Shown here: piece by piece, positions 3,685-60,257 of the stretch
Numbering within the stretch: the stretch's first letter is position 1
Layout: every line of letters begins with the position of its first letter
Notes under the pieces: model-generated
The model's input: only the letters and a program-made list of their open reading frames with translations
Database searches by the model: none
What the model was told of the DNA's origin: nothing
Made by a program: the position numbers and the translations under genes
Source: Heterodontus francisci
Taxonomy: Eukaryota
Direction: 5' to 3'
NCBI RefSeq assembly: GCF_036365525.1
Contig: NW_027142279.1
Coordinates: 620,001-684,000 of the forward strand
DNA length: 64,000 bases

Positions 3685-4175
3685 CCGTCCAGTTGTGGTC
3701 ACCACACTTTAGGAAGGATGAGTGTCCTTGACAGGCTGCAGAGGAGATTTACCAGAATGGTTCCAGGGATGTTACATGGTTAGATTGGAGAATATGGGGT
3801 GGTTTTCCTTTGAGCAAAGGCGATTGAGGGGAGATCGGATAGGAGATGTACACGATTGTGACAGTGTTAGATAAAGTAGACAGAGTAAACCTGTTCCCAT
3901 TAGTGGATGGTGCAAGGACTATTGGTCACAGATTGATGATTCTGGACAATAGATACTGGGGTATTTGAGGAAGAACCTCTATACACAGTGAGTGGTAACA
4001 ACAGGGAATTCACTGCCTACCAGGGTGGTGGAAGTGGAGACAATGAATGATTTCAAAAGGAAATTGAATGGACACTTGAAGGGGATAATCTTGCTAGACC
4101 GCAGGGATAGAGAGGTGGAATGGAATTGACTAGATTGCATGGACTCGATGGGCCGAATGGCCTCCTTCTGTACCA
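3685..4175 (+). mobile_element. Degenerate CR1 LINE 3' fragment
   Basis: cagaggagatttaccagaatggttccagg and the gggccgaatggcctcct tail match CR1 3' ends elsewhere in the window. Confidence 0.8.
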
Positions 4176-4341
4176 TACTGGCTGTATGACTTTTTGGCTA
4201 ACTGGCTGTAAAGTGTTTTCAAATGACATGGTGTTGCAAAGGTCACCAATAGAGATACACAGGGGCTCGTTGGTTTGCTGAGCTTTCCAGATGCTGCTGC
4301 TCACAGGTGGGTGTTTTAGGGGCAGGTTGGGAGGGTGAGGA

Positions 4342-4380
4342 CGTTTTTGTCTCACTCTGCTGCAGGGTTGTATCGCCGTG
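4342..4380 (-). other. 23-RSS of V segment (CACGGCG-23-ACAAAAACG)
   Basis: Heptamer 4380..4374, 23-nt spacer, nonamer 4350..4342, immediately after YYCAASV. Confidence 0.9.
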
Positions 4381-5006
4381 CCCACACTTGCTGCACAGTA
4401 GTAGGTCGCAGTGTCTGTCGGCTGGGGGTCGCCCAGCTGCAGGGAGAATCGGTTGCTTGCAGAGTCTTGTTGCACAGTGAACCGCTTCTCAAAGCCTGGC
4501 CCACAGCTGCCGTGCTCATTGCACATCCACTCTACTGCCTTCCCCTCCTGCCTGTACCAGTGCATGGTGTAGCTGCCCATGCTGGCTCCCTCCAAGTTGC
4601 AGCCGAGGGCGAGGGGCTTCCCCGGTCGAATAGAAGCCGCGGCTGGAGTCTGGACCACAGTAGGTGCAGACTGAACCCCTGGAACACATTCCATAAAAGA
4701 AAGTGATTCAGAATCATGCAAGGAAAATGGTAGCATAAATCATAGAATCTAATAGAATAGAAAGAGGCCGTTCTGCCCATCGTATCTGCGCTGGCTGTTT
4801 GAATGAGCTATCGAGTTAGTCTCACTTGCCCCTGCTCCTACCCCATTGCCCTCCCAATTTCCCTGCTCCAAGCCCTGATCCAATAGCCATTTGGGAGATT
4901 ACTATTGAATCTACTTCCACCTGCTGAAGGGATAGCACTTACAAAAAATCCAATGTCCAAGCAATAAGATGACCAAGATTGAGATGTTTTTAGCTGAGAC
5001 TGCCAT
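4381..5006 (-). CDS. TRBV: Intact TCR V gene segment (leader 5006..4943, V exon 4678..4381) with an extra Cys pair in the CDR2 region
   Basis: Leader MAVSAKNISILVILLLGHWIF with phase-1 GTAAGT donor; V exon VQSAPTVVQTP...LGCNL...MHWYRQ...WMCNEHGSCG...DTATYYCAAS; 23-RSS. The beta-chain assignment is inferred from neighbouring segments. Confidence 0.88.
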
Positions 5007-22620: not shown

Positions 22621-25600
22621 ATGTGGACTCTGCTGATCATTCTGGGTTACCTGAGTGAGTAACTTTCATTCTCGACAAAGTTCACCCCCAGTACAACTAG
22701 AACAAGCTGTGTTTATTCATACCGTTACATAGAATAATCTCCCAAGATGTTGCACAGAAATCTGATTGAAGAAATGTCTGACACAGCAGGAAAGGAGATG
22801 ACTGGAGGGCTGACTGTTAGTTTAAAAGAGCAGACGGAGGTGGAGAGGCAGAAAGGTTTAGGAGGCTAGACATCTTGAAGCCACATCAGACACTGCTGGA
22901 GGAAAGGGAGTGGAGGGAATTTATACAGGAGGCTTGGGTCAGAGAAACAGAGAGTTGGTGAAGATTACAGAAATGTGGTGGGAGAGGGCGGGAGAGGTCA
23001 TGAAAGAATTTGAACAGGAAGATGGAAGTTGTACATCAAAGGCGTTTGCAGCTGTGAACCAATGTGGGTCAGAGAGCACAGGGCTGATGTATGACTTAAA
23101 CTTTCTGCAAGATAACATGCAACAGCAGTGTGTTGGAGGAGACCTGACTTCTGGAAAGTGGAAGCTGGGAGGCTGGCCAGGAGTGGATTAGAAGATTTGA
23201 TTCTCCAGAAGGTAGAGGGTTTTTGGTAGAGGATTGGCTGAGGCAAAATCTGTGATGGTGGATATTACGGAGGTTGTAATTGGATGTCCTTGTGATGAGG
23301 AGGCGACAGGGAAGGAAGCTGGGCACAGTCGGAAGCTGATGAGAAATTGGAGAGGGACAAGATAGATTCTCGGGATACCCTAGAGGTAACAGTGCTGGAG
23401 TGGGTAAGGAAGACACTGCAGGAGACTCTCTGGCTGAGACTAGACTGGGTTGAGTGGAAATAGGCCAGAGCAGTTCCACCCAGCTGGACATGGAAGGAGA
23501 GGTGTTGGCGATGGATAGTGTGGTGAATTGTGTCAAAGACTGCCGACAATTCGAGAAGGATGATCAGAAACAGTATTCCTGACTTGGCTCTTGCAGCTTC
23601 TCTGCTGCTCAAACCCTTTAGCAGTACTTTGGTACCTCTAGACTTGACTATTCCAAAGATCTCCTGGCTGATCTCTCACATTCCACCTTCTGTACATTTT
23701 GGTCATCCAGTATGATACTGCCCAAGTCCAGTTCACCTTTCATCTCCGTGCTCACTGACCTACACTGGCTCCCGGTTCAGCAAGGCCTGGATTTCAATAT
23801 TCTCACAATCGTTTCCAGATCCTTCTATCACCTCGCCGTTCCCTACCGCTGAAAGCATCTCCAGCCCCACAACCCTCGGAGATCTCTGCGCTCCTCTAAT
23901 TCAGGCCTCTTGAGTATTCCCGATTCGAATCCCTTCCACCATTGGCAGCTGTGCCTTCACCTGCCGAGGCTTAACGCTATGGAATTCTCTCCCTCAACTT
24001 CTCCGTCTCTCCACCTCTCTTTCCGCCTTTCAGACACTCCTTAAAACCTACCTATTTGACATAGCATTTGGCCACCTGCCCGACCAGCTGCTTCTGTGGA
24101 TCGGTGTCAGTTCGGGATGGTAACACACCGATGAAGTGCTTTGGGACATTTTATTACATCAAAGGCAGTACATAAACGCAGGTTGTTGTTGGTTTTGAGA
24201 CTACACGTTCCCTCTGCAGGACCCACCAGTCACACTGGGTCGCTTGTGCTCCACCTGGCAGTTCTCGCTCCTCCTCCACTTTACATCTTTCCTACTGGGA
24301 TGAAGTGAAGCTGAGATATTTACTGCTTTCTGTGACCTGAGAGCTGGTGGTTAATCTAGAATAGGGAGGACTGTCTGTGAACAGCGAGTTAGAGGGGGAG
24401 GCTGAGCTGGGAGACAGATGGAAACCCAGTTTAGAGAAGGAGGACATTTTCCAGCTTTAATCTGGGGGGTTTCGACCAGGGCGGAGGGTGAAACTGAGAT
24501 GATTGGTATTTCGGGAGGGTACAAGGCGCTGTGTAACATTAACTGTACTTTATATTAACATTAAACATCTTTCTGTCACTCAGTCACAGACTCCACACTC
24601 ACTGACCCGTGTGTAAATCACACAGTCCTGGACCAGCCCTGGAGGAGCATCGATTGTGATGTCACTGTGGGCTCCGGTCAGGAGAAGTGTGATGATAATC
24701 TTGCTCAAGGATGGTACAGATTTAAAAGGTAATGTAAAGGAACAAATTCTGGGTAAATCAGTTAATGAGGGAGGAGTAATGGATTTCCCCCAGTTTCTGG
24801 CACTATCTGTTGTTCCCAGTCTCTCGAACAGTTAATATTTACCATCAGTTCAGGGACTGACTCTGTGATTATTGTTTCAGTTCTGGTGGATGGAAGATTC
24901 CGGACACTGTTGTCCCAGATTTTCACTGCTCCACACGTGCCACAGGCTGGTTACAGGGTAATTTCCGTCTTTAAAATATCAGATTTACATTCACTGTCCA
25001 GCACTGTTCACGTGGGTTACATTCTTCAATATTTATAAACTCTCATTTCAGGTTCCCATCCCAGTGTGGGACAGGGGGAAGTAACGAGGACAGTTTGTTT
25101 TAACAAGGCTGGAAATCGCTGTCACTGGACCCAGGAAATAAAGATCAAAAACTGCAGCAGTTATTTTGTTTATGAGTTGAAGCCTCCACCCGACTGTAAC
25201 GCTGCTTATTGTACAGGTAGATTGCTGTTTGTATATGGTGCAGATGGGTGATTCTGGGATGTCCCGTGTCTCCCATAGAAATGAGACAGTTTACTCACTG
25301 CCCTCCTTTTTGTAAGGGACACAGTGAATATAGGATCTGTAAAACAGAGTGAACTCTTCACTAAAACTCTCGGGAACTGAACTAGACGCTCGCTGTCTGG
25401 AGAGAGGGCTGGCATGTCTGGGTAGTATTCTGTCAGGTCTGCAATTGAGGAGATTCATGTTTTCTGGTGAGTGTCAGACACAGCAGCAGGATCCTGACAG
25501 ACTCTATCTGAAGGGCAGTCACTCTCACCTCACCTCTTGAGTTCAGCTCTTTTGTCCATGTTTGAACCACACTGTAATGAGGTCAGGAGCTGAGTGACCC

Positions 25601-28600
25601 TGGCGGAACCCAAACTGACCATCACTGAACAGGTAATTGCTGAGCAAGTGCCGCTTGATAGCACTGTCAACGACACCTTCCATCATTTTACTGATGATAG
25701 AGAGTAGACTGATGGGACGGTAATTGGGTGGCTTGAACTTGCCCTGCTTTGACTTGTCCTGCTTTTTATGCACAGGACATGCCTGGGCAGTTTTCCACAT
25801 TGCAGGGTAGATGCCAGTGTTGTAGCTGTACTGGAACAGCTTGGCTAAGGATGCAACAAGTTCTGGAGCACAGGTCTTCAGTACTACTTCCGGGATATTG
25901 TCAGGGCCCATAGCCTTTGCAGTATCCAGTGCCTTCAGTCATTTCTTGATATCAAGCGGAGTGAATCGAATTGGCTGAAGACTGACATCTGTGATGCTGG
26001 GGATTGCAGGAGAAGGCCGAGATGGATCATCAACTCAGCACTTCTGGCTGAAGATTTTTGCAAATGCTTCAGCCTTATCTTTTGCACTGATGTGCTGGGC
26101 TCCCTGATCATTGAGGATGTGGATATTTGTGGGGCCACCTCCTCCAGTTAGTTGTTTAATTGTCTTCTGCCATTCACGACTGGATGTGGCAGGACAAGAA
26201 ATACTGGAATCACTCAGCGGGTCTGGCAGCATCTGTGGAAAGAGAAGCAAAGTTAACGTTTCGGGTCAGCGACCCTTCTTCGGAACTCATTTGATCCGTT
26301 GGTTATGGGATCGCTTAGCTCTGTCCATCGCATGCTAATTATGCTGTTTGGCATGCAGATAGTCCTGTGTTGTAGCTTCACCAGGCTGACACCTCATTTT
26401 GAGGTATGCCTTGTGCTGCACTTTGCATGCCCTCCTGCACTCTTCATGGAACCAGGTTCGGTCTCCTGGCTTGATGGTCATGATCGAGTGGGGGATATAC
26501 CGGACCATGAGGTTACAGATTGTAGTTGAGTACAATTCTGCTGCTGCTGTTGTTCCCACAGCACCTCATGGATGCCCATTGTTGTATTGCTAGACTTGTT
26601 TGAATCTATCCCATTTAGCATGGTGATAGTGCCACACAACACGATGGACGGTATCCTCAATGTGAAGGTGGGACTTTGGCTCCACAAGGACTGTGCGGTG
26701 GTCACTCCCACCAAGACTGTCATGGACAGATGGATATGTGGCAGGCAGATTGGTGAGGATGAAGTCAAGTATATTTTCTCCTCTTGTTGGTTCTGTCATC
26801 ACCTACCGCAGTCCCAGACTAGCAGCTTTGTCTTTTAGGACACGGCTAGCTCGGTAAGGAGTGGGCTGCAGTGACTGAGAGGAGTGGTCTGCAGAGACTG
26901 AGGGGAGTGGGATGTAGTGACTGAGCGAATGAGATGCGGTGACTAGGTGGAGTAGGATACAGTGAATGTGGGGAGTGGGATGTAGTGACTGAGGGGAGTG
27001 GGGTGGAGTGACAGGGGAGTGGGAGGTAGTGACTGAGGGGTGTGGGATGCAGTGATTGAGCGGAGTGGGAAGTAGCGACTGAGGGGAGTGGGATGCAGAG
27101 ACTGAGGGGAGTGGGATACAGTGACTGAGCGAATGAGATGCGGTGACTAGGTGGAGTAGGATACAGTGAATGTGGGGAGTGGGATGTAGTGACTGAGGGG
27201 AGTGGGATGTAGTGACTGAGGGGAGTGGGATGTAGTGACTGAGGAGAGTGGGGTGTAGTGACTGAGGAGAGTGGGGTGTAGTGACAGGGGAGTGGGAAGT
27301 AGCGACTGAGGGGAGTGGGATACAGAGACTGAGGGGAGTGGGATACAGTGACTGACGGGAGTGGGATGTAGTGACTAAGGGGAGTGGGATGCTGTAATTG
27401 AAGGAAGTGGGATGTAGTGACTACTGAGTGTGATGTGGTAACTGAGGGGAGTAGGATGTAGAGAAGCGGGGAGTGAGGTGCAGTGACTGAAGGGAATGGT
27501 ATAGAGTGATTCGGTGGAGTGGGTACAGTGACATAGAGAAGTGGGATGCAGTGATTGAGGGGAGTGGGATGCAGTAATTGAGGGGAGTGGGATGCAGCGA
27601 CTAAGGGGAGAGGGATGCAGTGACTGAGGGCAGTGAGATGTAGTGACTGAGGGGAGTGGGATGTAGTGACTGTGGGGAGTGGGATGTAGCGACTGATGGG
27701 AGTGGGTGCACTGACTGAGGGGAGTGGGTGCAGTGAGTGAGGGGAGTGGGATGCTGTAATTGAGGGAAGTGGGTGTAGTGACTGAGGGGAGTGGCATGCA
27801 GTGACTCAGGGGAGTGTGATTCAGTGACTGTGGGGATTGGGATACAGTGACTGTGGGGAGTGGGATACAGTGACTGAGGAGAGTGTGATACGGTAACTGA
27901 GGGGAGTGTGATCCCTTCCATTTATCATCACATCCTCCCCGGTTTCACTTGTCACTAGAACTTTTCCCAGTTCTGATGTAAGGTCACATATTAACATTAA
28001 ACATCTTTCTGTCACTCAGTCACAGACTCTGCACTCACTGACCCGTGTGTAAATCACACAGTCCTGGACCAGCCCTGGAGGAGCAGCGATTGTGATGTCA
28101 CTGGGTGCTCCGGTCAGGAGAAGTGTGATGATAATCTTGCTCAAGGATGGTACAGATTTAAAAGGTAATGTACATAGAACATAGAACATACAGCACAGAA
28201 CAGGCCCTTCGGCCCACAATGTTGTGCCGATCCTTTGTCCTCTGTCAAGGACAATTTAATCTATACCCCATCATTCTCCTTTATCCATATACCTATCCAA
28301 AAGGTAAAGGAACAATTTCAGGGTAATCTAGTCAATATGGGCAGAGTAAGGGATTTCCCCCAGTTTCTGGTACTATCTGCTGGTACCAGTCTCTCTAACA
28401 GTTAATATTTGCCATCAGTTCAGGGACTGACTCTGTGATTTTTGTTTCAGTTCTGGTGGATGGAAGATTCCGGAGACTGCTGTCCCAGATTTTCACTGCT
28501 CCACACATGTTACAGGCTGGTTAAATGGTAATTTCAGCCTTGAGAATATCAGATTTACATTCACTGTACAGCACTGTTCACATGGGTTACAGTCTTCAAT

Positions 28601-31600
28601 ATTTATAAACTCTCATTTCAGGTTCCCATCCCAGCGTGGGACAGGGGGAAGTAACACGGACAGTTTGTTTATCCTGGGGTAGAAAACACTGCGACAAGGT
28701 CCATGAGATAAAGATCAAAAACTGCAGCAGTTACTTCGTTTATGAGTTGAAGTCCTTGTTTTATTATGCTGCGTATTGTACAGGTACATTGATGCTTCTA
28801 TATCATCCAGAGGGTGATTCTGGGATGTCCCGTGTCACCCACAGAAATGAGACGGTTTACTCACTCCCCTCCTTATTGTCAGGGACACAGTGAATAACGG
28901 ATCTGAAACACAAAGTGTACTTCACTGAAACTCTAGGGAACTGAACCAGACTCTGCTGTCTCTGTCTATCAGGCACTCTGATCCCTGCAGTGTTCATGGC
29001 TCACGTCAGGTCCCCACTGCAGTGCTGGGCACCTCACACTCCCTCTCCAGGAAGCAATGTTCACGAGGAGTTGGATAGGATCTTCGAGGGTTTGATAAAG
29101 ATGAAAATCTGACACTGTCTGGACTACAGAACTAAATAAACGAGCTCTTCGGGTTTTCTCCACTCTGCCCTCTTCCTTTATTACAGATCCAGAGACTGTC
29201 GCAACTGAGGAACCCGAGGAACAAACAACTCGAGAATCCACTAGGGGATCATCGTCTACCCCAGCGGTGTCTGGAACATCAGGTATCCCCCTTGTGGGGT
29301 GCATTCGAAACAGATTCCACACCCAATGTTGCACCATAGAAGATCAGTCCTCGAGATCATCCAGTCTCTTACTGAGGGAAGTGGGATGGAGTGACTGCGG
29401 GAAGTGGAAGGGAGTGAATGAGGGAAGTTGGATGGAGTGACTGAGGGGAGTGGGATGGGGTGACTGAGGGAAGTGGGATGGAGTGACTGAGGTGAGTGGG
29501 ATGGGGTGACTGAGGGGAGAGGGATGTGGTGACTGAGGGGACTGGGATGGAGTGACTAAGGAGAGTGGGATGATGTAATTGAGGGGAGTGGAATACATAG
29601 ACTGAGGGGAGTGGGATGTAGTGACTGAGGGGAGTGGGATGTAGTGACTGAGAGGAGTGGGATGCACTGACTGAGGGGAGTGGGATGCAGTGACGGAGGG
29701 GAATGGGATGCAGTGGACTGAGGGCAGTGGGATGCAGTAATTGAGGGGAGTGGGATGTAGTGACGGAAGGGAGTGGGATGCAGAGGCTGAGGGGATTGGG
29801 ATGCAGTGACTGGGGAGTGGAATGCACTGATTGAGGGGTGTGGGATGCAGTGACTGAGGGGAGTGGGATGCAGTGACTGAGGGGAGTGGGATGCACTGAT
29901 TGAGGGGAGTGGGATGCAGTGACTGAGAGGAGTGGGATGCAGTGGCTGAGAGGAGTGGGATGGGGTGACTGAGGGGAGTGGGATGTGGTGACTGAGGGGA
30001 GTGGGATGTGGTGATTGAGGGGAGTGGGATGCAGTGACTGAGGGGAGTGGGATGCAGTGACTGAGGGGAGTGGGATGATGTAATTGAGCGGAGTGGGATG
30101 CAGTAATTGAGGGAAGTGGGATGTAGAGACTGAGTGGAGTGGAATGCACTGATTGAGGGGTGTGGGATGCACCGATTGAGGGGAGTGGGATGCAGTGCCT
30201 GAGAGGAGTGGGATGCAGTGGCTGAGGGGAGCGGGTTGCAGTGACTGAGAGGAGTGGGATGCACTGATTGAGGGGAGAGGGATGCAGTGACTGAGAGGAG
30301 TAGGATGCAGTGGCTGAGGGGTGTGGGTTGCAGTGACTGAGGGGAGTGGGATGGGGTGACTGAGGGGAGTGGGATGTGGTGACTGAGGAGAGTGGGATGC
30401 AGTGACTGAGAGGAATGGGATGGAGGGACTGAGGGGAGTGGCATGATGTAATTGAGGGGAGTGGGATGCAGTGATTGAGGGGAGTGGGATGATGTAATTG
30501 AGTGGTGTGGGATGTCGTGACATGGGCAGTGCGATGCATGGACTGAGTGGAGTGGGATGCAGTGACTGAGGGAAGTGGGATGCAGTGACTGAGGGGTGTG
30601 AGATTTAGAGACTTAGGGGAGTGGGATGTAGAGACTGTGGGGAGTTGAATGTGGTGACTGAGGGCAGTGGGATGGGGTGACTGAGGGGAGTGGGATGTAG
30701 TGACTGAGGGGAGTGGGATGCAGTGACTGAGGGGAGTTAGATGCAGTGACTGAGGGGAGTGGGATGATGTAATTAAGGGGAGTGGGATAAGTGACTGAGG
30801 GGAGTGGGATGCATTGACTAAGGGGACTGGGAAGTAATGATTGAGGGCAGTGGGAAGAAGTGATTAGGGGAGTGGCATGTAGTGGGTGAAGGGATTGGGA
30901 AGTAGTGAGTGAGGGGAGTGGCATGTAGTGAGTGAGGGGAGTGGGATGTAGAGACTGAGAGGAGTGGGATGCAGTGACTGAGGGGAGTGGGATGTAATGA
31001 CTGAGGGGAGTGCGATGTTGAGACTGAGGGGAGTGGGATGTACTGGCTGAGGGGAGTGGGATGTAGTGACTGAGGGGAGTGGGATGCAGTGACTGAGGGG
31101 AGTGGGATGTAATGACTGAGGGGAGTGCGATGTTGAGACTGAGGGGAGTGGGATGTAGAAACTGAGGGGAGTGCGATGTAGAGACTGAGGGGAGTGGGAT
31201 GTAGTGGCTGAGGGGAGTGGGATGTAGTGACTGAGGGGAGTTGGATGCCGTGACTGAGGGGAGTGGGATGGAGAGACTGAGAGGATTGGGATGTAGTGAA
31301 TGAGGGGAGTTGGATGCCGTGAATGAGGGGAATGGGATGTAGAGACTGAAGGGAGTGCGATGTAGAGACTGAGGGGAGTTGGATGCCGTGACCGAGGGGA
31401 GTGAGATGTAGAGACTGAGAGGAGTGGGATGAGGTGACTGAGGGGAGTGAGATACAGCGTCTGAGGGTAGTATGATACAGTGACTGAGGGGTGTGATACA
31501 GTCACTCAGGGAGTGTGATACAGTGACTGAGGGGAGTGTGATACATTGTCTGAGGGTAGTATGATGCAGTCACTGAGGGGTGTGTGATACAGTCACTCAG

Positions 31601-34600
31601 GGAGTGTGATACAGTGACTGAGGGGAGTGTGATACAGTGTCTGAGGGTAGTATGATGCAGTCACTGAGGGGAGTGTGATGCAGCGACCGAGGGTAGTGTG
31701 ATACAGTGTCTGAGGGGGATGTGATACAGTGACAGAGGGTAGTGTGATACAGTGACTCAGGGAGTGTGATACTGTGACTGAGGGGAGTGTGATACAGTTA
31801 CGGAGGGGGGAGTGATACACTGACTGAGGTGAGTGGGACACAGTGACTGAAGGGAGTGTGATACAGTGACTGAGGGTAGTATGATACAGTCACTGAGGGG
31901 AGTGTGATACAGTGTCTGGGGTTAGTATGATACAGTCACTGAGGGGATGTGATGCAGCGACTGAGGGTAGTGTGATACAGAGTCTGAGGGGGATGTGATA
32001 CAGTGACTGAGCGTAGTGTGATACAGAGTCTGAGGGGGATGTGATACAGTGACTGAGGGTAGTGTGATACAATGACAGAGGAAGTGTGATACAGTGACAG
32101 AGGGGAGTGTGATGCAGTGTGTGAGGGGAGTGTGATGCAGTGACTGAGGGGAGCATGATACAGTGACTGAGGGGTGTGTGATACAGTCACTCAGGGAGTG
32201 TGATACAGTGACTGAGGGGAGTGTGATACAGTTACGGAGGGGAGTGTGATACACTGACTGAGGGGAGTGGGATACAGTGACTGAAGGGAGTGTGATACAG
32301 TGACTGAGGGGTGTGGGATGCAGTGACTGAGGGGAGTAGGATACAGTCAGTGAGGGGAGTGGGATGCAGCGACTGAGGGTAGTGTGATATAGTGAGTGAG
32401 GGGAGTGCGATACAGTGTCTGAGGGGAGTGTGATACACTGACTGAGGGGAGTGGGATACAGTGACTGAAGGGAGTGTGATACAGTGACTGAGGGGACTGC
32501 GATACAGTGTCTGAGGGGAGTGTGAGACACTGTCTGAGGGGAGTGGGATACAGTGACTGAGGGGAGTGTGATACACTGTCTGAGGGGAGTGTGAGACACT
32601 GTCTCAGGGGAGTGGGATACGGTGAACTGAAGGGTGTGTGATACAGTGACTGGGGGAGTGTGATACAGTGACTGAGTAGAGTGTGATACACTGTCTGAGG
32701 GGAGTGGAATGCAGTGACTGAAGGGAATATAATGCAGTGACTGAGGGGATTGTGATACAGTGAGCTGAAGGGAGTGCGATGCAGCGACTGAGGAGAGTGT
32801 GATACAGCGACTGACGGGAGTGGGATAAAGTGACTGAGGGGAATGTGATAAAGTGACTGAGGTGAGTGTAATGCAGTGACTGAGGTGACTGTGATAGAGA
32901 CTGAGGGCAGCATGATGCTCAAACTCAGGAATCCGAGGAACAATCGACTAGAGAATCTACTGAGGTTTCATCCACTACCCACCGGGCTCTCGAAGCTGAG
33001 GTATCTGCTTTGTGGGGTTATCATCGCAGAATCATGGAATCAAAGACTGGTTACGGCACAGAAAGTTTCTGTTCAGCCCATCTACACCCTGCCAGCTCTC
33101 TGGCAGTGCAACTCACCTACTCCCACTCCTGCCATTTTCCTGTCGCGCTGCAGATTGTTTCTGCCATGACAATTATCCAATTCCCTTTTGAAAGCCTCAA
33201 TTAAACCTGCCTCCAGCACACAGGGGCGGCACAGTGGCACAGTGGTTAGCACTGCAGCCTCACAGCTCCAGCGACCCGGGATCAATTCTGGGTACTGCCT
33301 GTGTGGAGTTTGCAAGTTCTCCCTGTGTCTGCGTGGGTTTTCTCCGGGTGCTCCGGTTTCCTCCCACAAGCCAAAAGACTTGCAGGTTGGTAGGTAAATT
33401 GGCCATTATAAATTGCCACGAGTATAGGTAGGTGGTAGGGAAATATAGGGACAGGTGGGGATGATTGGTAGGAATATGGGATTAGTGTAGGATTAGTATA
33501 AATGGGTGGTTGATGGTCGGCACAGACTCGGTGGGCCGAAGGGCCTGTTTCAGTGCTGTATTTCTAAACTAAACTCTCATGCAGTGCATTTCAGATCCTA
33601 ACTACTCACTGTGTGAAAAGGTTTCCCTGTCTCTGTTGTGACTTTTACCACTCACCTAAACCCGTTGCTCTCTAGTTCTGAAACAAAAACAAGAAATGCT
33701 GGATTCACTAAGCAGGTCTGGCAGCATCTGTGGAAAGAGAAGCAGAGTTAACGTTTCGGGTCAGTGACCCTTCTTCGGAACTGTCTAGTTCTGGATCCTC
33801 CCACCAAGAGGAACAGTTTTTCCCTGACTACTCTGTCCAGTTCCCTCTTGATTATGAACATCTTGATCAAATCTCCTCTTAATCTTCTCTTCTCCACGGA
33901 GAACAGCCCCAGCTTCTCCGATCTATTCATGTCACTGACGTCCCTCATCCCGGGAACCATTCTGGTAAATCTTCTCTGCACCCTCTCAAATACCTTAACA
34001 TCCTTCCTAAGTATTGACCGCTCTCTCGACCTGTCTTGCCACCTTCAATGATTTGTGCACATGTTCCCCCCAGGTCCCTCTGCCCCTGCATCTCCTTTAG
34101 AATTGTATCCTTTATTTTATATTGCCTCTCGTTCGTCCGACCAAAATGAATCACTTCACAATTCTCTGTGATAAATTTCATTTGCCAGTGTCTGCCCATC
34201 CCACCAGCCTGTCTATGACCTCCTGACGTCTATCACTGTCCTCCTCACAGTTCACAATACAACCAGGTTTTGTGTCATCTGCAGAATTTGAAAGTGTGCC
34301 CTGTACGCCCCAGTCTATGTCATTAATATACATCAGGAAAAACAGTGGTCTGAGCAATATTAGAGAGCAAAGCACAGATGCACAGAGAATTAGGAGGGAC
34401 AGATAACACTGGAGTCGATAAGAGTATCGTATTAGACGGGGGCAGTGGAAGAGGAAAGGAGATAAGCTGTAAATTCAGTTTAATGTGTGTGTATATGGAT
34501 GCACGGACAGTGGTAAATAAGGTTGTTGAGCTTCAGGCGCAGATAGCCACGTGGAAATATGATGTTGTGGCAATAACAAGGTCCTGGCTCTAAGTGGGGC

Positions 34601-36924
34601 AGGACTGTGTAGTGAATATTCCTGACTACAAGGTGTTCAGGAAAGAGAGGGGAGGAAGGAAAGGAGGAGGGGTATCAGTATTGATTAAGGGGAACATTAC
34701 AGTGCTGTTTTCTTTTCTCTCTCTTGTTCTCACTCATTCCAGATCTCCCTCACTCTTTTCTGTCTCACTCCTGTCGCCTACCCTCCTTTTCTCTCATTCC
34801 TGCTCTCTGTTGTTCTCTGACTCCACTTTCCCCCTGTCGTTTCGCTGATCACTTTGATAATCTCCTAAGTTTTCTCTGTTAGTTTTTGTTTCTTGTCGGA
34901 GTAGTAACTGATTCTGCAGCCGATGATACCTTGTGTCTCCCCTCAGTAAAGGCTGGTATACATTGATTCAGTGTGTCGAGGGAGTTAGATTACATACGAG
35001 AGGAGGTTCTGTGTTAAAACACTTCTGTCCACTCATCCAGCGTTCTGAATCCCAGTGAAATTCCTCTTGTCTTTATTTGACCCTCTCAGACTCGGGGATT
35101 CCGTCTACTCCCGAGGAACCTCCCGACTCCCAGCCTGTTTCGAATGACGGTGGAAACATTTCAGATTCTCCACATTTCAGGAATATTAAATCCCTCCTCC
35201 TGTCTCAGTCTGGCACAAATATATCAGGACCGAGGGCCTCCAAACAGCTGTGTGATCGTTCTGTGTAGGAAAACCCATCGTTCTCACTCTCTCTCTCTGC
35301 CTTGTCTGTGCTGTCAGACAAGAGTTGCAGTCACTTGTGTTCAGTCTGAGTGGAATCATTGGGAAACTAAGAAACGTAAACGTTCAGAAATTCCTTCAGA
35401 AATATCTTTGAGCTTCTATCTCACATCCCTCTCTCTGTAACTCTCAGTTTTATCTCTGTCTCTCTGTTTCTCCTTTATCTGCCTTTCACACGCATATATA
35501 AATATATTTAATTTCTGTAACCGCCTCTCTCCGATGTGGGTCTCAGTTTCTCCAGCTCCCTCTTTCGCCTCACTCTGTCTCCCACTCTCTCTGATGTTCT
35601 GTCTCCCTGTCTGTCTCTCTGACTCTCACTTTCTCTCTCTCTGTCTCTCTCACAGATGCTCTTTGTCTGTCTCTCTGTCTTTGTCTTTGTCAGAGGGACA
35701 GAGAGCATCAGAGAGAGAGAGAGAGTGAGAGTGATCGATAGAGACAGAGAAAAGGGCAGTGAGACCGGAGTAAACACGGAATGCAAATGATCTAGGGAGA
35801 TGGAACAAGAGGCAACAGAGAAGAGAGTGCAGGATAGAGGATGATAACAAAGGGAGGTCAGATTAGAGACAAGACGAGTTGAGATAGAGAGAATAACAGA
35901 GACAGATGAACAAACTAGTGGATGACAAACTGGAGGAAAGAGAGTTTAAATTAGAGAGGAGAGATCATTCGAAACACGTCCCGTGCCCTGTGCTAAACTC
36001 TGGGTGTGTTCAACCTGTTGATGTTGTGACTGTTGTGTTTAGATACCAAATACAAGAGGATTAATGTGAAGATCACTTCAATGACTGATCTGGATGATGA
36101 AACTGCAAAGAGAATCGTTGTGGAGAGGGTGAGAGACTGCACTGTACTGAGGAGAAACACGGGAGACAACAGATCCTCCCTCTCACTGTCTGTATTCACT
36201 GAATGGGAACTCCAGATCATTATTTAAACAGCTCTAGTTCCCCCTCTGCTTATCTTCTGGTCCCCCAGATCAGGCTTGTGAGGGGTTGAATGGGCTTCCT
36301 CCTGAGCCTGTGTGAAAGGCTCGAGAGGGGGTGAGGGGGCTGAATGGTCTTCTCCTGTTCCCGTGTAAGAACTCGAATGAGGGGCTGAATGGCCTCCTCC
36401 TGTTCCTGTGTAACAGACTCGAGGGGATGAATGGCCTCCTCGTTGTACGGTAACCTCTCTCTGATCTTCCCTCTCACTCTCCCCATTCTCTCTTTATGTC
36501 CTTTCTATCTCTGTCTCTTTCTCTGCCTCGCTCACCCACTCTGTATTTCTCTTTCTTTGTCTTTCTTTCTGTCTGTGTCTGTCCCTCACTGCATCTCTGA
36601 CGACCTCTCGCTCTCACGCCCTCTGTTTCTCTACCTCTGTCTCAATCCCTGTAGCTCTCCCACCCTCCCTCTCCATCTCTCCCTCTATCTGAGTATCTTT
36701 GCCTCACCCTGTCTCTCACTGTCTTGTCCCCACCCTCTCTCCCGATCTCTGTCTGTATGCTCTCTGTCTATTTCTATTCACTCCTCCCCTTGCAGTAATA
36801 CTCATCGTTTCTCCTCTCTGTGATGCAGATGAAGCACATGTTCCAGGATCAGTGTCCACACACGAAGCTCGAATTGGATCCAGAAGACGTTCAGTGCTCG
36901 GCTAGTGAGCCTGTGGAAGTGTGA
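22621..36924 (+). CDS. Secreted UMOD/GP2/OIT3-like protein: signal peptide, two D8C/D10C domains, S/T/E-rich stalk, short C-terminal domain, no ZP (~380 aa). Coding exons 22621-22654, 24584-24728, 24881-24957, 25052-25216, 28020-28164, 28451-28527, 28622-28783, 29187-29282, 35090-35149, 36043-36128, 36829-36924
   Basis: All exons are bounded by AG/GT with compatible phases, total 1143 nt and stay open to TGA. DPCVNHTVLDQPWRS...CD...GWYRF...WLxGSHP...TVC...C...IKNC...YFVYEL...YCT is the D8C/D10C signature. The donor at 35150 (GTGGAA) is weak, so the last three exons are less certain. Confidence 0.78.
22730..24190. mobile_element. L2-type LINE remnants (intronic, both orientations)
   Basis: LILLELSAVFDTIHH...LGGTALAYFHS on minus; ctacactggctcccgg...ctccttaaaacctacctatttgac 3' end on plus. 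Confidence 0.65.
24584..25216 (+). CDS. D10C domain copy 1 (three exons)
   Basis: DPCVNHTVLDQPWRSIDCDVTVGSGQEKCDDNLAQGWYRFK/SSGGWKIPDTVVPDFHCSTRATGWLQ/GSHPSVGQGEVTRTVCFNKAGNRCHWTQEIKIKNCSSYFVYELKPPPDCNAAYCT. Confidence 0.9.
25540..26850 (-). mobile_element. Non-LTR retrotransposon endonuclease/RT fragment (intronic)
   Basis: GPDNIPEVVLKTCAPEL...NYRPISLLSIISK...QFGFRQGHS; EPTRGENILDFILTN...SDH. Confidence 0.9.
26860..27912. repeat. G-rich 23-bp minisatellite (gtgactgaggggagtgggatgca), intronic
   Basis: Tandem repetition. Confidence 0.95.
28020..28783 (+). CDS. D10C domain copy 2 (three exons)
   Basis: DPCVNHTVLDQPWRSSDCDVTGCSGQEKCDDNLAQGWYRFK/SSGGWKIPETAVPDFHCSTHVTGWLN/GSHPSVGQGEVTRTVCLSWGRKHCDKVHEIKIKNCSSYFVYELKSLFYYAAYCT. 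Confidence 0.9.
28173..28280 (-). mobile_element. Short CR1 3'-tail insertion just after the exon donor of D10C copy 2
   Basis: (catagaa)n...caggcccttcggcccaca; absent from the paralogous intron at 24733. Confidence 0.75.
29370..32910. repeat. 3.5-kb G-rich 23-bp minisatellite with two sub-variants
   Basis: gggatgcag/gggatgtag units to ~31440, then gtgatacag units. Confidence 0.95.
33223..33575 (+). mobile_element. HE1/V-SINE, near full length, nested in a CR1 remnant
   Basis: ggggcggcacagtggcacagtggttagc head, conserved core, taaactaaac tail. Confidence 0.9.
33780..34705. mobile_element. CR1 LINE fragments (minus-strand RT; plus-strand endonuclease start)
   Basis: QRRFTRMVPGM and PLFFLMYINDID on minus; DARTVVNKVVEL...YDVVAIT on plus. 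Confidence 0.8.
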
Positions 36925-37589: not shown

Positions 37590-38080
37590 TTCCATTGTCT
37601 CTGCTCTGCCACACTGCTTGTCTCACATCCAATACTGGATGAGCAGATATTTTCTACTAATAAATATTGGGAAGACTGAAGCCATTGTCTGTGGTCCCCG
37701 ACACAAATGTCATTCTTGGACCACCGACACCATCTCTGGTACCTGTCTGAAACTGATCAAGACAGTTTTCAGCCTTTGTTGTTGTGTTTGACCCCGAGAT
37801 GAGTTTTCGACCACCTATCCACACCATCACCAAGACTGTCCATTTTGCACCTCCATACCATCTCTCGACTCTGCCCCTGCTTCAGCTCATCTGCTGCTGA
37901 AACCCTCATCCGTGCCTCTGTTACCTCCAGACTGGACTATTCCAATACTCTCCTGGCCAAGCTCACATCTTTCACACTTCCTGATCTTATCCTCATAGAA
38001 ACATTTGCTGCCTGTGTCTTCACTCACTCCGAACCCTGTTCACCCATAATCCCTGGAACTATTGCCATTCACTGACTCCC
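37590..38080 (+). mobile_element. L2 LINE RT fragment
   Basis: WMSRYFLLINIGKTEAIV; AETLIRASVTSRLDYSNTLL. Confidence 0.8.
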
Positions 38081-40240: not shown

Positions 40241-41229
40241 TTATAACCTTACTGACTGCCCAATTCAATATCAGGGTCGTTAAAGTCTCAAATCATCACA
40301 TAATTTTTTTCACCCCTCAGTTATTTCTTTACAGCTCTGCTCCTCCATGTCCTTCCTGCTCTATGGCAGCTGATAAAATACCTGCAAAGTAAAAATGTTT
40401 TTCAGAAGATGCTCACAGTCGGAGAACAGTGGACTGTTCATATCAGAGGCACAGACAAGATCTCCCACAGGCCACAGGTACACATTCAGCAACATATGCA
40501 AACAACAATGAGCAAAGCCAGAGAGCTGGGAGAAGGCTTTTGTAGGCAGTACACACGACATTGTGAGGCCCCTGAGCAGATATCAATGTCCCTGCTGCTG
40601 TGCCCCTGACATTGGGACTGCAATGAATTTGCATTTACAGTCAAGCATTGCCCAGATTACATTGCAGAAAGATGAATGAATTCTGCCCACTTGAGGGAGT
40701 TATTGAGAGAACCCTCGCCCACGACTGACACATTGCACCAATGGGAAAATACTGCAGATGCTGGAACTCTGAAACACAAACAGAATATTGAGTAGGTCTG
40801 GCAGCATTTGTGGAGAGAGAAACAGAGTTAACGTTTCAGCTTGGTCAGCCTTCTTCAGAACGGCAATGGTGAGAGATGGTACAGATGTTAATAAAGTACA
40901 GAGGCAGGGAAAGGGACAAAACAGCAATTTATAATACTCTCGCACCTTTAACGTAATAAAACCTGCCAAGGCTCTTCACAGGAGCATTATAAACACAGTA
41001 TGAAACTGAGTGACATAAGGAAAGATTCGGTCAGACAATCAAAATCTCAGTCAAAGAGGTAAGTTTTAAGGAGAATTTTAAATTGAAAAGTGAGGTGGAG
41101 AGGTGGAGAGGTGTAGTGAAGCAATTCCAGAGCTTAGGCCGCAGGCAACTGAAGGTGTGACCACCAATGGTTGAACAATTAAGGTCGGGGATGCTTAAAG
41201 GGCCAGAATTAGAGGAGTGCAGAGATTCC

Positions 41230-45805: not shown

Positions 45806-46130
45806 NNNNNNNNNNNNNNNNNNNNNNNNNNNNNNNNNNNNNNNNNNNNNNNNNNNNNNNNNNNNNNNNNNNNNNNNNNNNNNNNNNNNNNNNNNNNNNN
45901 NNNNNNNNNNNNNNNNNNNNNNNNNNNNNNNNNNNNNNNNNNNNNNNNNNNNNNNNNNNNNNNNNNNNNNNNNNNNNNNNNNNNNNNNNNNNNNNNNNNN
46001 NNNNNNNNNNNNNNNNNNNNNNNNNNNNNNNNNNNNNNNNNNNNNNNNNNNNNNNNNNNNNNNNNNNNNNNNNNNNNNNNNNNNNNNNNNNNNNNNNNNN
46101 NNNNNNNNNNNNNNNNNNNNNNNNNNNNNN
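45806..46130. other. Assembly gap (325 N)
   Basis: Run of n. Confidence 1.
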
Positions 46131-48098: not shown

Positions 48099-48898
48099 AT
48101 GTTGCATGAAGTTCTCTGTCTAACCTTGATGGCTGCACTCTTCCCACGTAAGTCAAAGTCAGAAACTGTGCACAATAATGTATTGTCATGTCAGCGGTGA
48201 TTCTGTCCAAAACACTCCTGTGTCAGAGTCTCACTACAGAACATTGAGCTCAAAGTCAAGGCTGACAACCCAGGTGTCAGGACCGAGGGAGTGCTGCACT
48301 ATCGCAGAGGCTGTACTGAGAGAGTGCTGCACTGTCGCAGAGTCAGCACAGAGGGAGTGCTGCACTGTCACAGAGGCACTATTGAGGAAGTGCTGCACTG
48401 TCGACGAAGCGGCACTGAGGGAGTGCTGCACTGTCGCAGAGACAGTACTGAGGGAGTACCTACATTGGTTGCAAAGCCCTTTCTGATGTCCTGAGGTCCT
48501 GAACGGCGCTATATTAATGTAAGCCCTTTATTTCTTGCAATGCAGCTCCTGCTCCAATCCATTATTGACTGAAATAATAATCTAATCGATGTTCCATTCC
48601 ACAGGAATACTCTCCTCCTATGTGGAACAGTCGCCCTCTATCCTATCGCTTTCCGCAGGAGAGTCGACAACACTCAGATGCACGCTGACCAATACTGACT
48701 ATTCCTTTCTATACTGGTACAGACAACAAGCAGACAGGGCACTGGAAGCTCTGTTCTATTCTGCTACAGAAGGGTCTGTTACCAATTACACGTCCGAGTC
48801 ATTTAAGGCAGTCAGAGCCAGCAATACACTGTTTACTTTGGCACTGAGAGACGCCGCTCCATCTCACACCGCTGTCTATTTCTGCACTTGTAGTATCG
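48099..48898 (+). CDS. TRBV: Intact TCR beta V segment of a distinct family (leader 48099..48147, V exon 48605..48898)
   Basis: Leader MLHEVLCLTLMAALFP with C|GTAAGT; ILSSYVEQSPSILSLSAGESTTLRCTL...LYWYRQ...LFYS...HTAVYFCTCS. Confidence 0.9.
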
Positions 48899-48937
48899 CA
48901 CAGTGTTTGAGAAAGCGGATCCGCAGCTGCAAAAACC
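48899..48937 (+). other. 23-RSS (CACAGTG-23-GCAAAAACC)
   Basis: Directly 3' of the V exon. Confidence 0.93.
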
Positions 48938-48956
48938 TGCAGTGGATGAATGGGAG

Positions 48957-50615
48957 TTCAGTGCTCATCTTCCCCCGGCAGGGGGCAGCAGTTGATTAAA
49001 TCTCAATGCTCATCTTCCCCCGGCAGGGGGCAGCAGTAGATTGAATCTCAGTGCTCATCTTCCCCCGGCAGGGGGCAGCAGTAGATTGAATCTCAGTGCT
49101 CATCTTCCCCCAGCAGGGGGCAGCAGTAGATTGAATCTCAGTGCTCATCTTCCCCCGGCAGGGGGCAGCAGTAGATTAAATCTCAGTGCTCATCTCCCCC
49201 CGGCAGGGGGCAGCAGTAGATTAAATCTCAGTGCTCATCTCCCCCCGGCAGGGGGCAGCAGTAGATTGAATCTCAGTGCTCATCTCCCCCCGGCAGGGGG
49301 CAGCAGTAGATTGAATCTCAGTGCTCATCTTCCCCCGGCAGGGGGCAGCAGTAGATTAAATCTCAATGCTCATCTTCCCCCGGCAGGGGGCAGCAGTAGA
49401 TTAAATCTCATTGCTCATCTCCCCCCGGCAGGGGGCAGCAGTAGATTAAATCTCAGTGGTCATCTCCCCCCGGCAGGAGGCAGCAGTAGATTGAATCTCA
49501 ATGCTCATCTTCCCCCGGCAGGGGGCAGCAGTAGATTGAATCTCAGTGCTCATCTTCCCCCGGCAGGGGGCAGCAGTAGATTGAATCTCAGTGCTCATCT
49601 TCCCCCGGCAGGGGGCAGCAGTAGATTGAATCTCAGTGCTCATCTTCCCCCGGCAGGGGGCAGCAGTAGATTAAATCTCAATGCTCATCTTCCCCCGGCA
49701 GGGGGCAGCAGTAGATTGAATCTCAGTGCTCATCTTCCCCCGGCAGGGGGCAGCAGTAGATTGAATCTCTGCGCTCATCTTCCCCCGGCAGGGGGCAGCA
49801 GTAGATTGAATCTCAGCGCTCATCTTCCCCCGGCAGGGGGCAGCAGTAGATTGAATCTCAGTGCTCATCTTCCCCCAGCAGGGGGCAGCAGTAGATTGAA
49901 TCTCAGTGCTCATCTTCCCCCGGCAGGGGGCAGCAGTAGATTAAATCTCAATGCTCATCTTCCCCCGGCAGGGGGCAGCAGTAGATTAAATCTCAGTGCT
50001 CATCTCCCCCCGGCAGGGGGCAGCAGTAGATTAAATCTCAGTGCTCATCTCCCCCCGGCAGGGGGCAGCAGTAGATTGAATCTCAATGCTCATCTTCCCC
50101 CGGCAGGGGGCAGCAGTAGATTGAATCTCAGTGCTCATCTTCCCCCGGCAGGGGGCAGCAGTAGATTGAATCTCAGTGCTCATCTTCCCCCGGCAGGGGG
50201 CAGCAGTAGATTGAATCTCAGTGCTCATCTTCCCCCGGCAGGGGGCAGCAGTAGATTGAATCTCAGTGCTCATCTTCCCCCGGCAGGGGGCAGCAGTAGA
50301 TTAAATCTCAATGCTCATCTTCCCCCGGCAGGGGGCAGCAGTAGATTGAATCTCAGTGCTCATCTTCCCCCGGCAGGGGGCAGCAGTAGATTGAATCTCT
50401 GCGCTCATCTTCCCCCGGCAGGGGGCAGCAGTAGATTGAATCTCTGAGCTCATCTTCCCCCGGCAGGGGGCAGCAGTAGATTAAATCTCAATGCTCATCT
50501 TCCCCCGGCAGTGGGCAGCAGTAGATTGAATCTCTGCGCTCATCTTCCCCCGGCAGGGGGCAGCAGTAGATTAAATCTCAGTGCTCATCTTCCCCCGGCA
50601 GTGGGCAGCAGTAGA
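48957..50615 (+). repeat. 45-bp tandem repeat, 37 copies; 35 carry a CTCF-consensus motif (CCGGCAGGGGGCAG or a close variant)
   Basis: Motif position runs from 48975 to 50595 with an exact 45-bp period; units nearly identical. The repeat is certain; CTCF function is inferred. Confidence 0.95.
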
Positions 50616-51959: not shown

Positions 51960-52088
51960 NNNNNNNNNNNNNNNNNNNNNNNNNNNNNNNNNNNNNNNNN
52001 NNNNNNNNNNNNNNNNNNNNNNNNNNNNNNNNNNNNNNNNNNNNNNNNNNNNNNNNNNNNNNNNNNNNNNNNNNNNNNNNNNNNNNNN
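51960..52088. other. Assembly gap (129 N)
   Basis: Run of n. Confidence 1.
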
Positions 52089-53367: not shown

Positions 53368-53840
53368 ATGTATCTGTTACTGACTCTGATCACCCTGTTT
53401 CACCGTAAGGGATTTTATTGAAACAATAATTCTACTTAACATTTCTTTCGTTGTATTTATTTTTGATTCTCTCTCTCTCTTCTCTCTCCCCAAGGCACTG
53501 AATGTCCCTGTTTACTGATCTCTCTGTCTCTTTCCCAGATGTGAACTCACAGACTATCCACCAGACTCCCACCGCTGTCTCTAAATTGCCTGGTGAGAGA
53601 GTGGAACTGAAGTGCACTGTGCAGGGCAGCAGCACCAGTATCCTATACATGTACTGGTACAGACAATACCCAGGGAAGGAGCCGCAGATGATGTTTTACT
53701 CTATCGCTGCACAAAACGTGAAATCAGAGGGGATGGTGGACGGTTTCACCGCCGAGAGACCGAGTAACTTCGACTTCAACCTGGAGTCCTCCAGCCTGCG
53801 GGAGGATCACTCGGCCGTGTATTTCTGTGCCTGGAGTCTT
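53368..53840 (+). CDS. TRBV: Intact TRBV30-like V segment (leader 53368..53404, V exon 53539..53840)
   Basis: MYLLLTLITLFH/HVNSQTIHQTP...KCTV...WYRQ...HSAVYFCAWSL; RSS CACAGTG(53841)-23-ACAAAAACC(53871..53879). Confidence 0.94.
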
Positions 53841-53924
53841 CACAGTGACTCAGAGAGATGGAGCAGTTCAACAAAAACCTCAAAGGCAGCAGGAAACACC
53901 TGTGGAAGATAAAACTGCTCGGAG

Positions 53925-57969: not shown

Positions 57970-58443
57970 ATGTATCTGTTACTGACTCTGACCAACCTGT
58001 TTCACCGTAAGGCATTTTATTGAAACAATAATTCTACTTAACATTTCTTTAGGTGATGTTTTTATTTATTTATTTCTCTCTTTCTCTCTCCCACTGGACT
58101 GAAGTTCCCTGTTTACTGATCTCCTCCTCTCCATGTCTCTTTCCCAGATGTGAACACACAGACTATCCACCAGACTCCCGCCGCTGTCTCCAAATTTTCT
58201 GAGGAGCAGGTGAAGCTGAAATGCACCGTGCAGGGCAGCAGTAACCCTGACATGTTCTGGTACAGACAATACCCGGGGAAGGAGCCACAGTTTATGTTTT
58301 ACTCCACAGGTACTGATCACATAAATCCGGAGAAGGCGGTGGACGGTTTCACCGCCGAGAGACCGACTAGCTCCCAGTTCAATCTGGAGCCCTCCAGCCT
58401 GCGGAAGAATCACACGGCAGTGTATTTCTGTGCCTGGAGAGAT
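57970..58443 (+). CDS. TRBV: TRBV30-like V with an open reading frame but defective heptamer (leader 57970..58006, V exon 58148..58443)
   Basis: ...KCTVQGSSNPDMFWYRQ...HTAVYFCAWRD; RSS TACAGTG(58444)-23-ACAAAAACC. Confidence 0.9.
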
Positions 58444-60257
58444 TACAGTGACTCAGAGAGTTGGAGCAGTTCAACAAAAACCACAAAGGCAGCAGGAAAC
58501 ACCTGTGGAGGGTAAAACTGCCCGAAGCCTCGAATTTCTTTTGTTTTGCAGAGCGAAAGTGTTTATGATAACAAGAAGAGATGGGTCAGAGTGGTAGTGA
58601 GAGATTAGATATACAGGTAGTAGAGAATGTGCTAAGAACAATTGACAAGGATAACACGAGATCTGAGGTTCTAACTATCAGGAAAGATCAATTATAAAAC
58701 GACTTGAGTTCTTCTGCATTGACACTGAGTTTTCCTCCTCTGTAGGGTTAACAGAGGGTGCTCTAGGACCATGAATACACAATGGCCTGGCAAACATTTA
58801 ATAGGAAAACAGAAAGAGGCAGAGATCATACAGCCCTCGAGCTTCATACACATTGACAGGAGAAGCACATTCATCACCTTCGAGAGGGATACACACACAC
58901 TCAACGAGAGAGACAAAGAGAAGGAGACCGAGTGTGTGAGAGAGGGATAGAACAAGATTGAGAGGAAAACTGACAGCGACAGAGAGACTGAGACAGAGAG
59001 ACAGAGACTGGGACAGATAGACGGAGACAAAGAGACAGAGAGACTGAGCCTGAGACAGAGAGAGACTGAGAGAGAGACTGAGAAAGAGAGATTGAGACAG
59101 AGAGGAGAAGAGAGAGGAGAGCGAGGAGGACAGAGAGGGGGAACAAGAAAGAGCGAGAGGGAAAACAAAAAACACAGAGGAAGAGACTGAGACAGGGACA
59201 CTGAGACAGAGAGACAGAGAGAGAGACTGAGAGACAGAGCGAGACAGAGAGTGAGAGAGGGACAGAGAGAGAGAGCGTTAGAGAGACTGAGAGAGAGAGA
59301 CTGAGAGAGAGAGACTGAGAGAGAGACTGAGAGAAAGCGACTGAGGGAAAGCGACTGAGACATAGAGACAGACAGAGGAGAGAGAGGAGGACAGAGAGGG
59401 GGAAGAAGGAAGTGCGAGAGAAAAGCAAAAAAAACACAGAGGAAGAGAGTGAGACAGATTGGGTGACAGACACACACACACACAGAATGAGACAGGGAGA
59501 GAAAGACAGGAAGCACTAAAACAGAGGGAGACAGTGAACTAAAGACAGAGCGAGTGAAAAACACACGCACACACATGCACAGCTTTGTATCCGTGCCCAT
59601 TCATCTTCCAACTCATTGAATAAGAATATCCCGTGATCTCAGGATTGTAACTATCAGGAAAGAATAACAATAAAAGGACTGGGGCTGTTATAGACTGACA
59701 CTGTTTATGTTTTGACCACAGGGACAGCTGAGGAAGCTCTAGGACCATGTGATGTACAATGGCTTTTGAGAAGGAGTTCACAGGAAAACTGAAACAGTGA
59801 GAGAACATACAGTCCTCCAGGTTGATATACATGACCAGGAGAAGGAAATCCACATCCTTAGAGAGAGAGAAGAGAGAGAGAGACACACACACAGCGAGAG
59901 AGACAGAGAGACAAACAAAGAGAGAGAGAGAGACCTAATGTGTGTGTATCTGTGAGAGAGAGACTGAAATAAACAGACTGAGACATATAGGGAGGCATAG
60001 AAGAGAGACAGAGAGGAAGAAAGGAGCATCACAAGTAAAGGACAGGGAGAGACAGAGAGAGAGAGAAAGTGTGACATTGGCAACCAACTCGATTCTCATT
60101 TGTTGATGTGGGAAATGAACGTCACCATCTCTGCCTCACTTCCTAATGCTCTCCCTGTTCCTCCCAATGATTTGTAAAGAGTGGGTTGGTTATTGACAAC
60201 ACTGATCACTCCTGCTCTCTCCCCTTTGCAGATTCAGAGGGCAGCTTAAAGTAAAAG

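Follow-up and report, generated by a model that had tools for sequence, protein, structure and literature searches.

An apparently intact gene for a small secreted protein with two uromodulin/GP2-type heads, set among T-cell receptor V segments of the horn shark Heterodontus francisci

What is a gene built from uromodulin- and GP2-like domains doing among T-cell receptor (TCR) V segments, and is it a working gene? The question is raised by a 64-kb stretch of Heterodontus francisci DNA, called the window below, in which such a gene lies on the plus strand between an ATG at 22621 and a TGA at 36922-36924 (all coordinates are window positions). We conclude, at a probability of roughly 0.8, that it is one apparently intact member of a family of elasmobranch genes for small secreted glycoproteins; it encodes a leader, two GP2/uromodulin-type heads, a stalk, and a tail, with neither a ZP module nor an anchor. 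The mammalian proteins uromodulin (UMOD) and GP2 are regarded as glycan decoys carried on filaments; sharks and rays have instead amplified a soluble form of the same domain, with two heads and no filament, that is so far unstudied.

We re-derived the exon borders from the sequence. Behind a leader exon come two three-exon D8C/D10C modules (D8C-1 and D8C-2), a stalk exon of 96 nt, a 60-nt exon that is optional, and a pair of exons for the tail (E1 to E11; Table 1). Every acceptor is an AG that follows a pyrimidine tract, every donor begins with GT, the frames are open, and the phases from E1 to E11 (0>1>2>1>1>2>1>1>1>1>0) are compatible throughout. Summed exon lengths come to 1143 nt, which gives 380 aa from 11 exons, or 360 aa from the 10 that are left without E9. 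A preliminary description of the locus had arrived at the same coordinates, exon count, and length (∼380 aa), all borne out by these borders and phases, and its assignment to one gene of a signal-type leader, tandem D8C/D10C domains, a Ser/Thr/Pro stalk of acidic character, and a small tail is likewise supported. E9 appears optional because its donor is weak and because one paralogue model, P0156, skips it; since two others, P0010 and P0159, use it, both the 380- and the 360-aa readings are plausible. The E1 leader (mean hydropathy, 2.07), with which RefSeq paralogues P0010 and P0156 and white-shark P0059 also begin, is a probable signal peptide. The heads and stalk of the elasmobranch family are built as modular phase 1-1 exon cassettes, and the product of the stalk exon is probably O-glycosylated and unfolded. 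Within the 1.6 kb searched beyond the stop codon, the sole AATAAA is at 37659.

The identity of the heads was established by searching the exons of the window singly; for whole-protein Pfam, AlphaFold, Foldseek, and Atlas searches, we used as a stand-in the paralogue P0156 (XP_067883778.1), which is 98.6% identical to the 10-exon reading. E4 matches Pfam D8C_UMOD (PF23283), a family that includes OIT3 and VWDE besides UMOD and GP2, at 4e-9, with 37 bits against a gathering cutoff of 27; E7 alone falls below that cutoff (7.4e-5, 23.3 bits), and the whole P0156 protein scores 75 bits over two stretches. When compared with PDB sequences by phmmer, E4 aligns end to end with human UMOD (3e-10) and GP2 (2e-9), E2 finds GP2 best (2.1e-6; UMOD, 4e-3), and E3, a very short query of 25 residues, finds no match. 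The AlphaFold model of P0156, computed from a 50-sequence family alignment, has a mean predicted local distance difference test (pLDDT) value of 82.6: both heads lie at about 90, the tail at 68 to 88, and stalk residues 275-302 below 50. Foldseek places the modeled heads on the GP2 decoy module (7p6r_B) with a root mean square deviation of 1.3 Å over 125 columns, 41% identity, and a target template modeling score of 0.85; the heads of this paralogue are thus predicted to have the D10C fold.

The ten-cysteine pattern of D10C is not kept, because both heads carry Val at C3 and Arg at C6, a paired loss. D8C-1 retains eight canonical cysteines and D8C-2 seven; C9 of D8C-2 is Tyr in the window copy and Cys in P0156, P0010, P0162, and P0115 (four of five paralogue repeats). 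Relative to GP2 and UMOD, the loop ahead of C2 is extended and contributes one additional Cys to D8C-1 and two to D8C-2, for a total of nine in each head. As a side observation, an odd number of cysteines per head, together with two in the tail, may leave each head with a free thiol available for interdomain or intermolecular disulfides.

No part of the gene would connect these heads to a filament or a membrane. Frog uromodulins, which contain EGF, D8C, and ZP domains, match nothing in the 64 kb except the six D8C exons, so that no ZP or EGF exon was found there, and the last exon, E11, is hydrophilic (mean Kyte-Doolittle hydropathy, −0.73). Both results support the earlier statement that EGF, ZP, transmembrane, and glycosylphosphatidylinositol (GPI) parts are absent; together with Pfam searches of the paralogues, they place the gene outside the ZP-module proteins with their ZP and EGF domains and C-terminal GPI or hydrophobic signal. 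The tail, of ∼55 residues with two Cys, has a conserved pattern that a local jackhmmer search recovered in 30 fetched shark and ray proteins. It had been likened to a partial SEA-type unit, for which we found no support: P0156 matches no Pfam family besides D8C at E ≤ 1, and its modeled tail consists of a single helix (residues 319-337) without a sheet. An Atlas structure search with part of the tail returned only weak, unrelated small folds. We regard the tail as a conserved, family-specific module that may be related to SEA distantly or in part.

How far does this architecture extend? With E4 as the query, HMMER found 1354 proteins at E ≤ 0.001 among 1.84 billion representatives, many with several D8C stretches and some with as many as 17; the most repeat-rich are from corals, Nematostella, amphioxus, and teleosts. 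The closest relatives are elasmobranch RefSeq predictions whose only Pfam domain is D8C. Six are from the horn shark (P0010, P0152, P0156, P0159, P0162, and P0115), and dozens more are from Mustelus, Carcharodon, Cetorhinus, Rhincodon, Hemiscyllium, Scyliorhinus, Hypanus, Hemitrygon, Mobula, Amblyraja, Leucoraja, and others, under names such as "uncharacterized protein," "uromodulin-like," "OIT3-like," "GP2-like," and "mucin-5AC-like." The window gene has the leader, the three-exon phase 1-1 D8C module, the 96-nt stalk exon, and the ∼55-residue two-Cys tail of this ZP-less family. It is therefore not singular but a further member of a shark and ray family that RefSeq already predicts and that is uncharacterized; a literature search found no published study of it. 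P0010 (472 aa) has a leader, two heads, a stalk, an E9 segment, and a tail, which is exactly the order first proposed for the window gene. The closest protein, P0156 (360 aa), skips E9 and differs from the 10-exon reading at 5 of 360 residues, with four changes in E4 (Lys/Ile, Gln/Asn, Asn/Glu, and Ala/Val) and Tyr/Cys in E7. The window copy has letters of its own in E4 (Gln at 25072-25074, Lys at 25147-25149, and the Asn and Ala codons that follow C9) and in E7 (Tyr at 28765-28767).

Transcript evidence comes from four runs aligned to positions 23400-29390; three represent a single sample of organism A, and the fourth is from organism B. The runs are Logan contigs whose kind was guessed as RNA, and they were placed at 90% likeness, so that transcripts of paralogues fall on the window copy as well. 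GT..AG joints lie at the exact predicted borders: 24957>25052 in X1 and X3; 25216>28020, which joins D8C-1 to D8C-2, in all four runs and both organisms; and 28783>29187, from E7 to E8, in X2 record 15, a contig that covers E8 without mismatch and extends 86 nt past it. Another contig, X1 record 1, stops precisely at 24728, the end of E2. The joints show that the contigs derive from spliced RNA, and the D8C-1 to D8C-2 joint refutes the assignment of the two heads to separate genes. The letters of the informative contigs are those of paralogues: over E4, an X1 contig departs from the window at 7 positions, including A>T at 25148, as P0156 would give; contigs across the other junctions have 12 to 15 mismatches or paralogue letters; and those across E7-E8 have 2 mismatches in E7, an exon in which P0156 shows at least 1 difference. 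Given these letters and the 90% placement, splicing from D8C-1 through D8C-2 to the stalk is shown for the family rather than for the window copy in particular. Separately, an X3 contig (organism B) joins 28487 to 24923, from the middle exon of the second head back to that of the first, with 5 extra letters, which hints at another order of repeats or more heads in organism B, or at a chimeric contig.

Several observations weigh against an intact gene. No contig was seen to be letter-perfect for the window copy at the diagnostic sites. No RefSeq protein identical to it was found, and P0156 is alone in its 90% cluster; thus, no RefSeq protein seems to come from the window copy, unless the window stems from another assembly or haplotype. 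The loss of C9 in D8C-2 leaves C2 without a partner, and the cysteine count of D8C-1 is odd too. Finally, a second copy of the stalk exon is dead: at 95 nt it would shift the frame if it were spliced in, and skipping it yields a P0156-like form. It is therefore possible, though doubtful, that the window copy is a recently disabled or decaying duplicate, open in frame yet silent or misfolding in its product, and that the functional genes are paralogues such as that for XP_067883778.1; the Tyr where four paralogues have C9, the dead stalk exon, the better agreement of the RNA contigs with paralogues, and the lack of an identical RefSeq protein all point that way. However, all 10 or 11 exons have open frames and canonical sites. 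P0159 also lacks C9, so its loss may be tolerated, and P0156 also has no further stalk exon, which makes a single stalk exon a normal form of the gene. Contigs, moreover, are unable to show absence of expression. We accordingly favor an apparently intact gene over a decaying one.

The two heads differ almost exclusively in one loop patch. The block at 24552-25398 is duplicated at 27988-28961; the first D8C exon with its intron flanks (24552-24736 vs 27988-28172) is 97% identical, and the remainder of the block is 72 to 95% identical, a pattern that suggests a recent gene-conversion tract. Between E4 and E7, framework codons show no nonsynonymous and 7 synonymous differences, whereas in codons 16 to 27, which begin immediately past C5 and end immediately past C7, 15 differences are nonsynonymous and 1 is synonymous (Fisher P = 3e-5). 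The C5-C7 stretch corresponds to the β-E/loop/β-F protein-binding epitope of human UMOD, which is bound by Bence Jones light chains (PMC8930769). Thus, both heads have been constrained while one loop, a known protein-binding site in UMOD, diverged. The overall ratio of nonsynonymous to synonymous differences per site (pN/pS) between the heads is 0.60, with no global signal of positive selection; only the contrast between patch and framework is significant, and with such small numbers we consider it a lead rather than proof of positive selection. Among the horn-shark paralogues, variability is concentrated at four places: the same C5-C7 stretch, the loop ahead of C2, the vicinity of C4, and the residues preceding C9.

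One function was put forward in the preliminary description, namely, that of a soluble bivalent anti-adhesin whose two high-mannose N-glycans, one after each DPC, would act as decoys for mannose-specific fimbriae, as N65 does in GP2. The sequon on which this proposal turns is indeed present in both domains: in both E2 and E5, DPC is followed by N-H-T, which lines up with GP2 N65, a position at which 6 of 7 horn-shark repeats keep a sequon and at which the substitution N65A in GP2 impairs FimH binding (PMC8930769). The decoy module of GP2 and UMOD, however, is a disulfide-stapled β-hairpin (Cx-Cy) packed on D10C (PDB 7P6R, 7PFP, and 7Q3N), and the groove between the two shelters the glycan and helps keep it high-mannose; even so, GP2 N65 carries complex glycans also (PMC8930769). 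In the shark gene, only 7 Cys-free residues separate the leader from the first DPC and another 7 separate the heads, and there is therefore no β-hairpin; consistent with this, the P0156 model has no strand before residue 25. High-mannose retention is thus deprived of the groove to which it is tied. The C3-C6 disulfide is missing as well, the second domain of the window copy has lost C9, neither head has a sequon at the position of UMOD N275, only 81 of 215 repeats in the fetched family keep the one at the GP2 N65 position, and without a ZP filament the valency would be two rather than hundreds. These differences weaken the FimH-decoy reading of the D10C heads, which we now think unlikely; the N-glycan at the sequon may nonetheless have a role.

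The setting among TCR V segments is as first described, with V exons, all of the Cys...Trp...Tyr-x-Cys pattern, on both sides of the gene, at 4056-4739 on the minus strand and from ∼44 kb onward on the plus strand; four of them, between 53.5 and 62.4 kb, are closely related members of a single subfamily. The leader region of the gene showed no relation to V-gene leaders in a sensitive blastn comparison with the window. Pieces of paralogue RefSeq models match intron 1 and the downstream flank of the gene: the N terminus of P0162 at 22747-22854 (100%) and, downstream, the C-terminal ends of P0159 and P0152 at 37848-38009 (89%) and 40367-40606 (96%). The duplication therefore extends past the gene, and the matching model ends themselves are probably repeat-derived or mis-spliced. 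The window copy arose by local duplication among TCR V segments, and the shared flanks suggest that copies of the gene duplicate together with these segments.

The introns are rich in repeats. Two arrays of the same 23-bp minisatellite lie within introns, both G-rich on the coding strand, with a GC skew of up to 0.7; the second adjoins the dead stalk exon and has replaced its acceptor tract. Many further minisatellites occur throughout the window. Contig depth over the apparent retroelement fragments at 25543-26800, which were read from open reading frames (ORFs), reaches several hundred thousand in all four runs, reflecting expressed copies genome-wide. That 2.8 kb of retroelement and minisatellite separates the two modules, and 5.8 kb separates E8 from E9, might suggest a chance chain of exons, with D8C modules from separate genes or tail exons from another gene, but this is scarcely credible given the 25216>28020 joint in four runs, the X2 contig that links E7 to E8 and continues 86 nt, and RefSeq paralogues that show the same order and end in the same tail.

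Table 1. Exons of the D8C gene and other features of the 64-kb window
Feature	Position	Strand	Description
E1	22621..22654	+	Start codon and 11-residue hydrophobic leader; phase-1 donor GTGAGT
E2	24584..24728	+	D8C-1 exon 1: C1, sequon after DPC, extra Cys, C2, GWYRF motif
E3	24881..24957	+	D8C-1 middle exon: C4; Val in place of C3
E4	25052..25216	+	D8C-1 last exon: C5, C7, C8, C9, C10; Arg in place of C6
E5	28020..28164	+	D8C-2 exon 1; with flanks, 97% identical to E2
E6	28451..28527	+	D8C-2 middle exon
E7	28622..28783	+	D8C-2 last exon; one codon shorter than E4; Tyr (TAT, 28765-28767) at C9 position
E8	29187..29282	+	96-nt phase 1-1 acidic stalk exon; 13 Ser/Thr, 6 Asp/Glu, and 3 Pro in 31 residues
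E9	35090..35149	+	Optional 60-nt phase 1-1 exon, Pro/Ser/acidic; weak donor GTGGAA
E10	36043..36128	+	First tail exon: strand-like stretch and start of helix
E11	36829..36924	+	Last exon: remainder of helix, two Cys, hydrophilic end, TGA
Dead stalk-exon copy	32906..33000	+	95 nt (one base short); polypyrimidine/acceptor tract overwritten by 23-bp minisatellite
23-bp G-rich minisatellite	26858..27912		46 copies; intron between D8C-1 and D8C-2
23-bp minisatellite (same)	29371..32907		154 copies; between E8 and dead stalk exon
Apparent retroelement (reverse-transcriptase-type) ORF fragments	25543..26800	-	D8C-1/D8C-2 intron; read from ORFs
V exon	4056-4739	-	Cys...Trp...Tyr-x-Cys pattern
V exon	48586-48996	+	Cys...Trp...Tyr-x-Cys pattern
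V exon	53502-53909	+	Closely related subfamily
V exon	58120-58512	+	Closely related subfamily
V exon	60419-60811	+	Closely related subfamily
V exon	62053-62448	+	Closely related subfamily
Consensus recombination signals	44205 and 53841
Assembly gaps	45806-46130 and 51960-52088

What, then, might the protein do? Judging from homology and from the pattern of variation, it would be a soluble extracellular factor of mucosal or humoral defense that works by binding or agglutination. Its contacts would be made mainly through the variable surface loops of both heads, above all the C5-C7 stretch, with possible help from an N-glycan at the conserved sequon. A bolder proposal, for which we claim only a slim chance, is that the shark D10C scaffold is a germline-diversified recognition domain, that is, a family co-amplifying with TCR V segments, with a framework under purifying selection and a hypervariable C5-C7 loop; that loop and two others may then give each paralogue, and each head, a ligand specificity of its own. 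If the loops do bind ligands, the family would represent a novel type of diversified innate receptor; otherwise, it is one more family of mucin-like secreted glycoproteins. The window copy contributes the modular exon plan, two heads conserved save for one sharply bounded loop patch, and the setting among TCR V segments; past the loop-patch contrast and its own small defects, it adds little by itself.

One known system for comparison is the GP2/UMOD decoy module. Its D10C domain is held by the disulfides C1-C8, C2-C9, C3-C6, C4-C10, and C5-C7 (PMC8930769). The shark gene shares with it the predicted D10C fold and the pairs C1-C8, C2-C9 (C9 being missing in D8C-2 of the window copy), C4-C10, and C5-C7, and, with GP2, the sequon at the N65 position. 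It differs in having no β-hairpin and no C3-C6 disulfide, in the extra Cys before C2, and in carrying two heads in tandem; it also lacks the EGF domain, the ZP module, and the GPI anchor and hence forms no filament.

The elasmobranch RefSeq paralogues are the closest, with a leader, one to several D8C heads, an acidic stalk from 96-nt exons, a C-terminal tail, and no ZP module, all in common with the window copy. What sets the window copy apart from them is the Tyr at C9 of D8C-2, the four E4 substitutions relative to P0156, and one live and one dead stalk exon, where P0010 and P0159 have several stalk exons. Tandem-D8C proteins of Montipora, Acropora, Nematostella ("notch homolog"), amphioxus, the loach Paramisgurnus, and Colossoma resemble the shark gene in having several D8C repeats per chain; unlike it, they are much larger and often include EGF or other domains. 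For the genomic setting, the parallel lies elsewhere: trypsinogen genes are interleaved in the TRB loci of amniotes. There too, a family of secreted proteins unrelated to the TCR sits among V segments and duplicates with them, but the shark D8C gene belongs to a different protein family.

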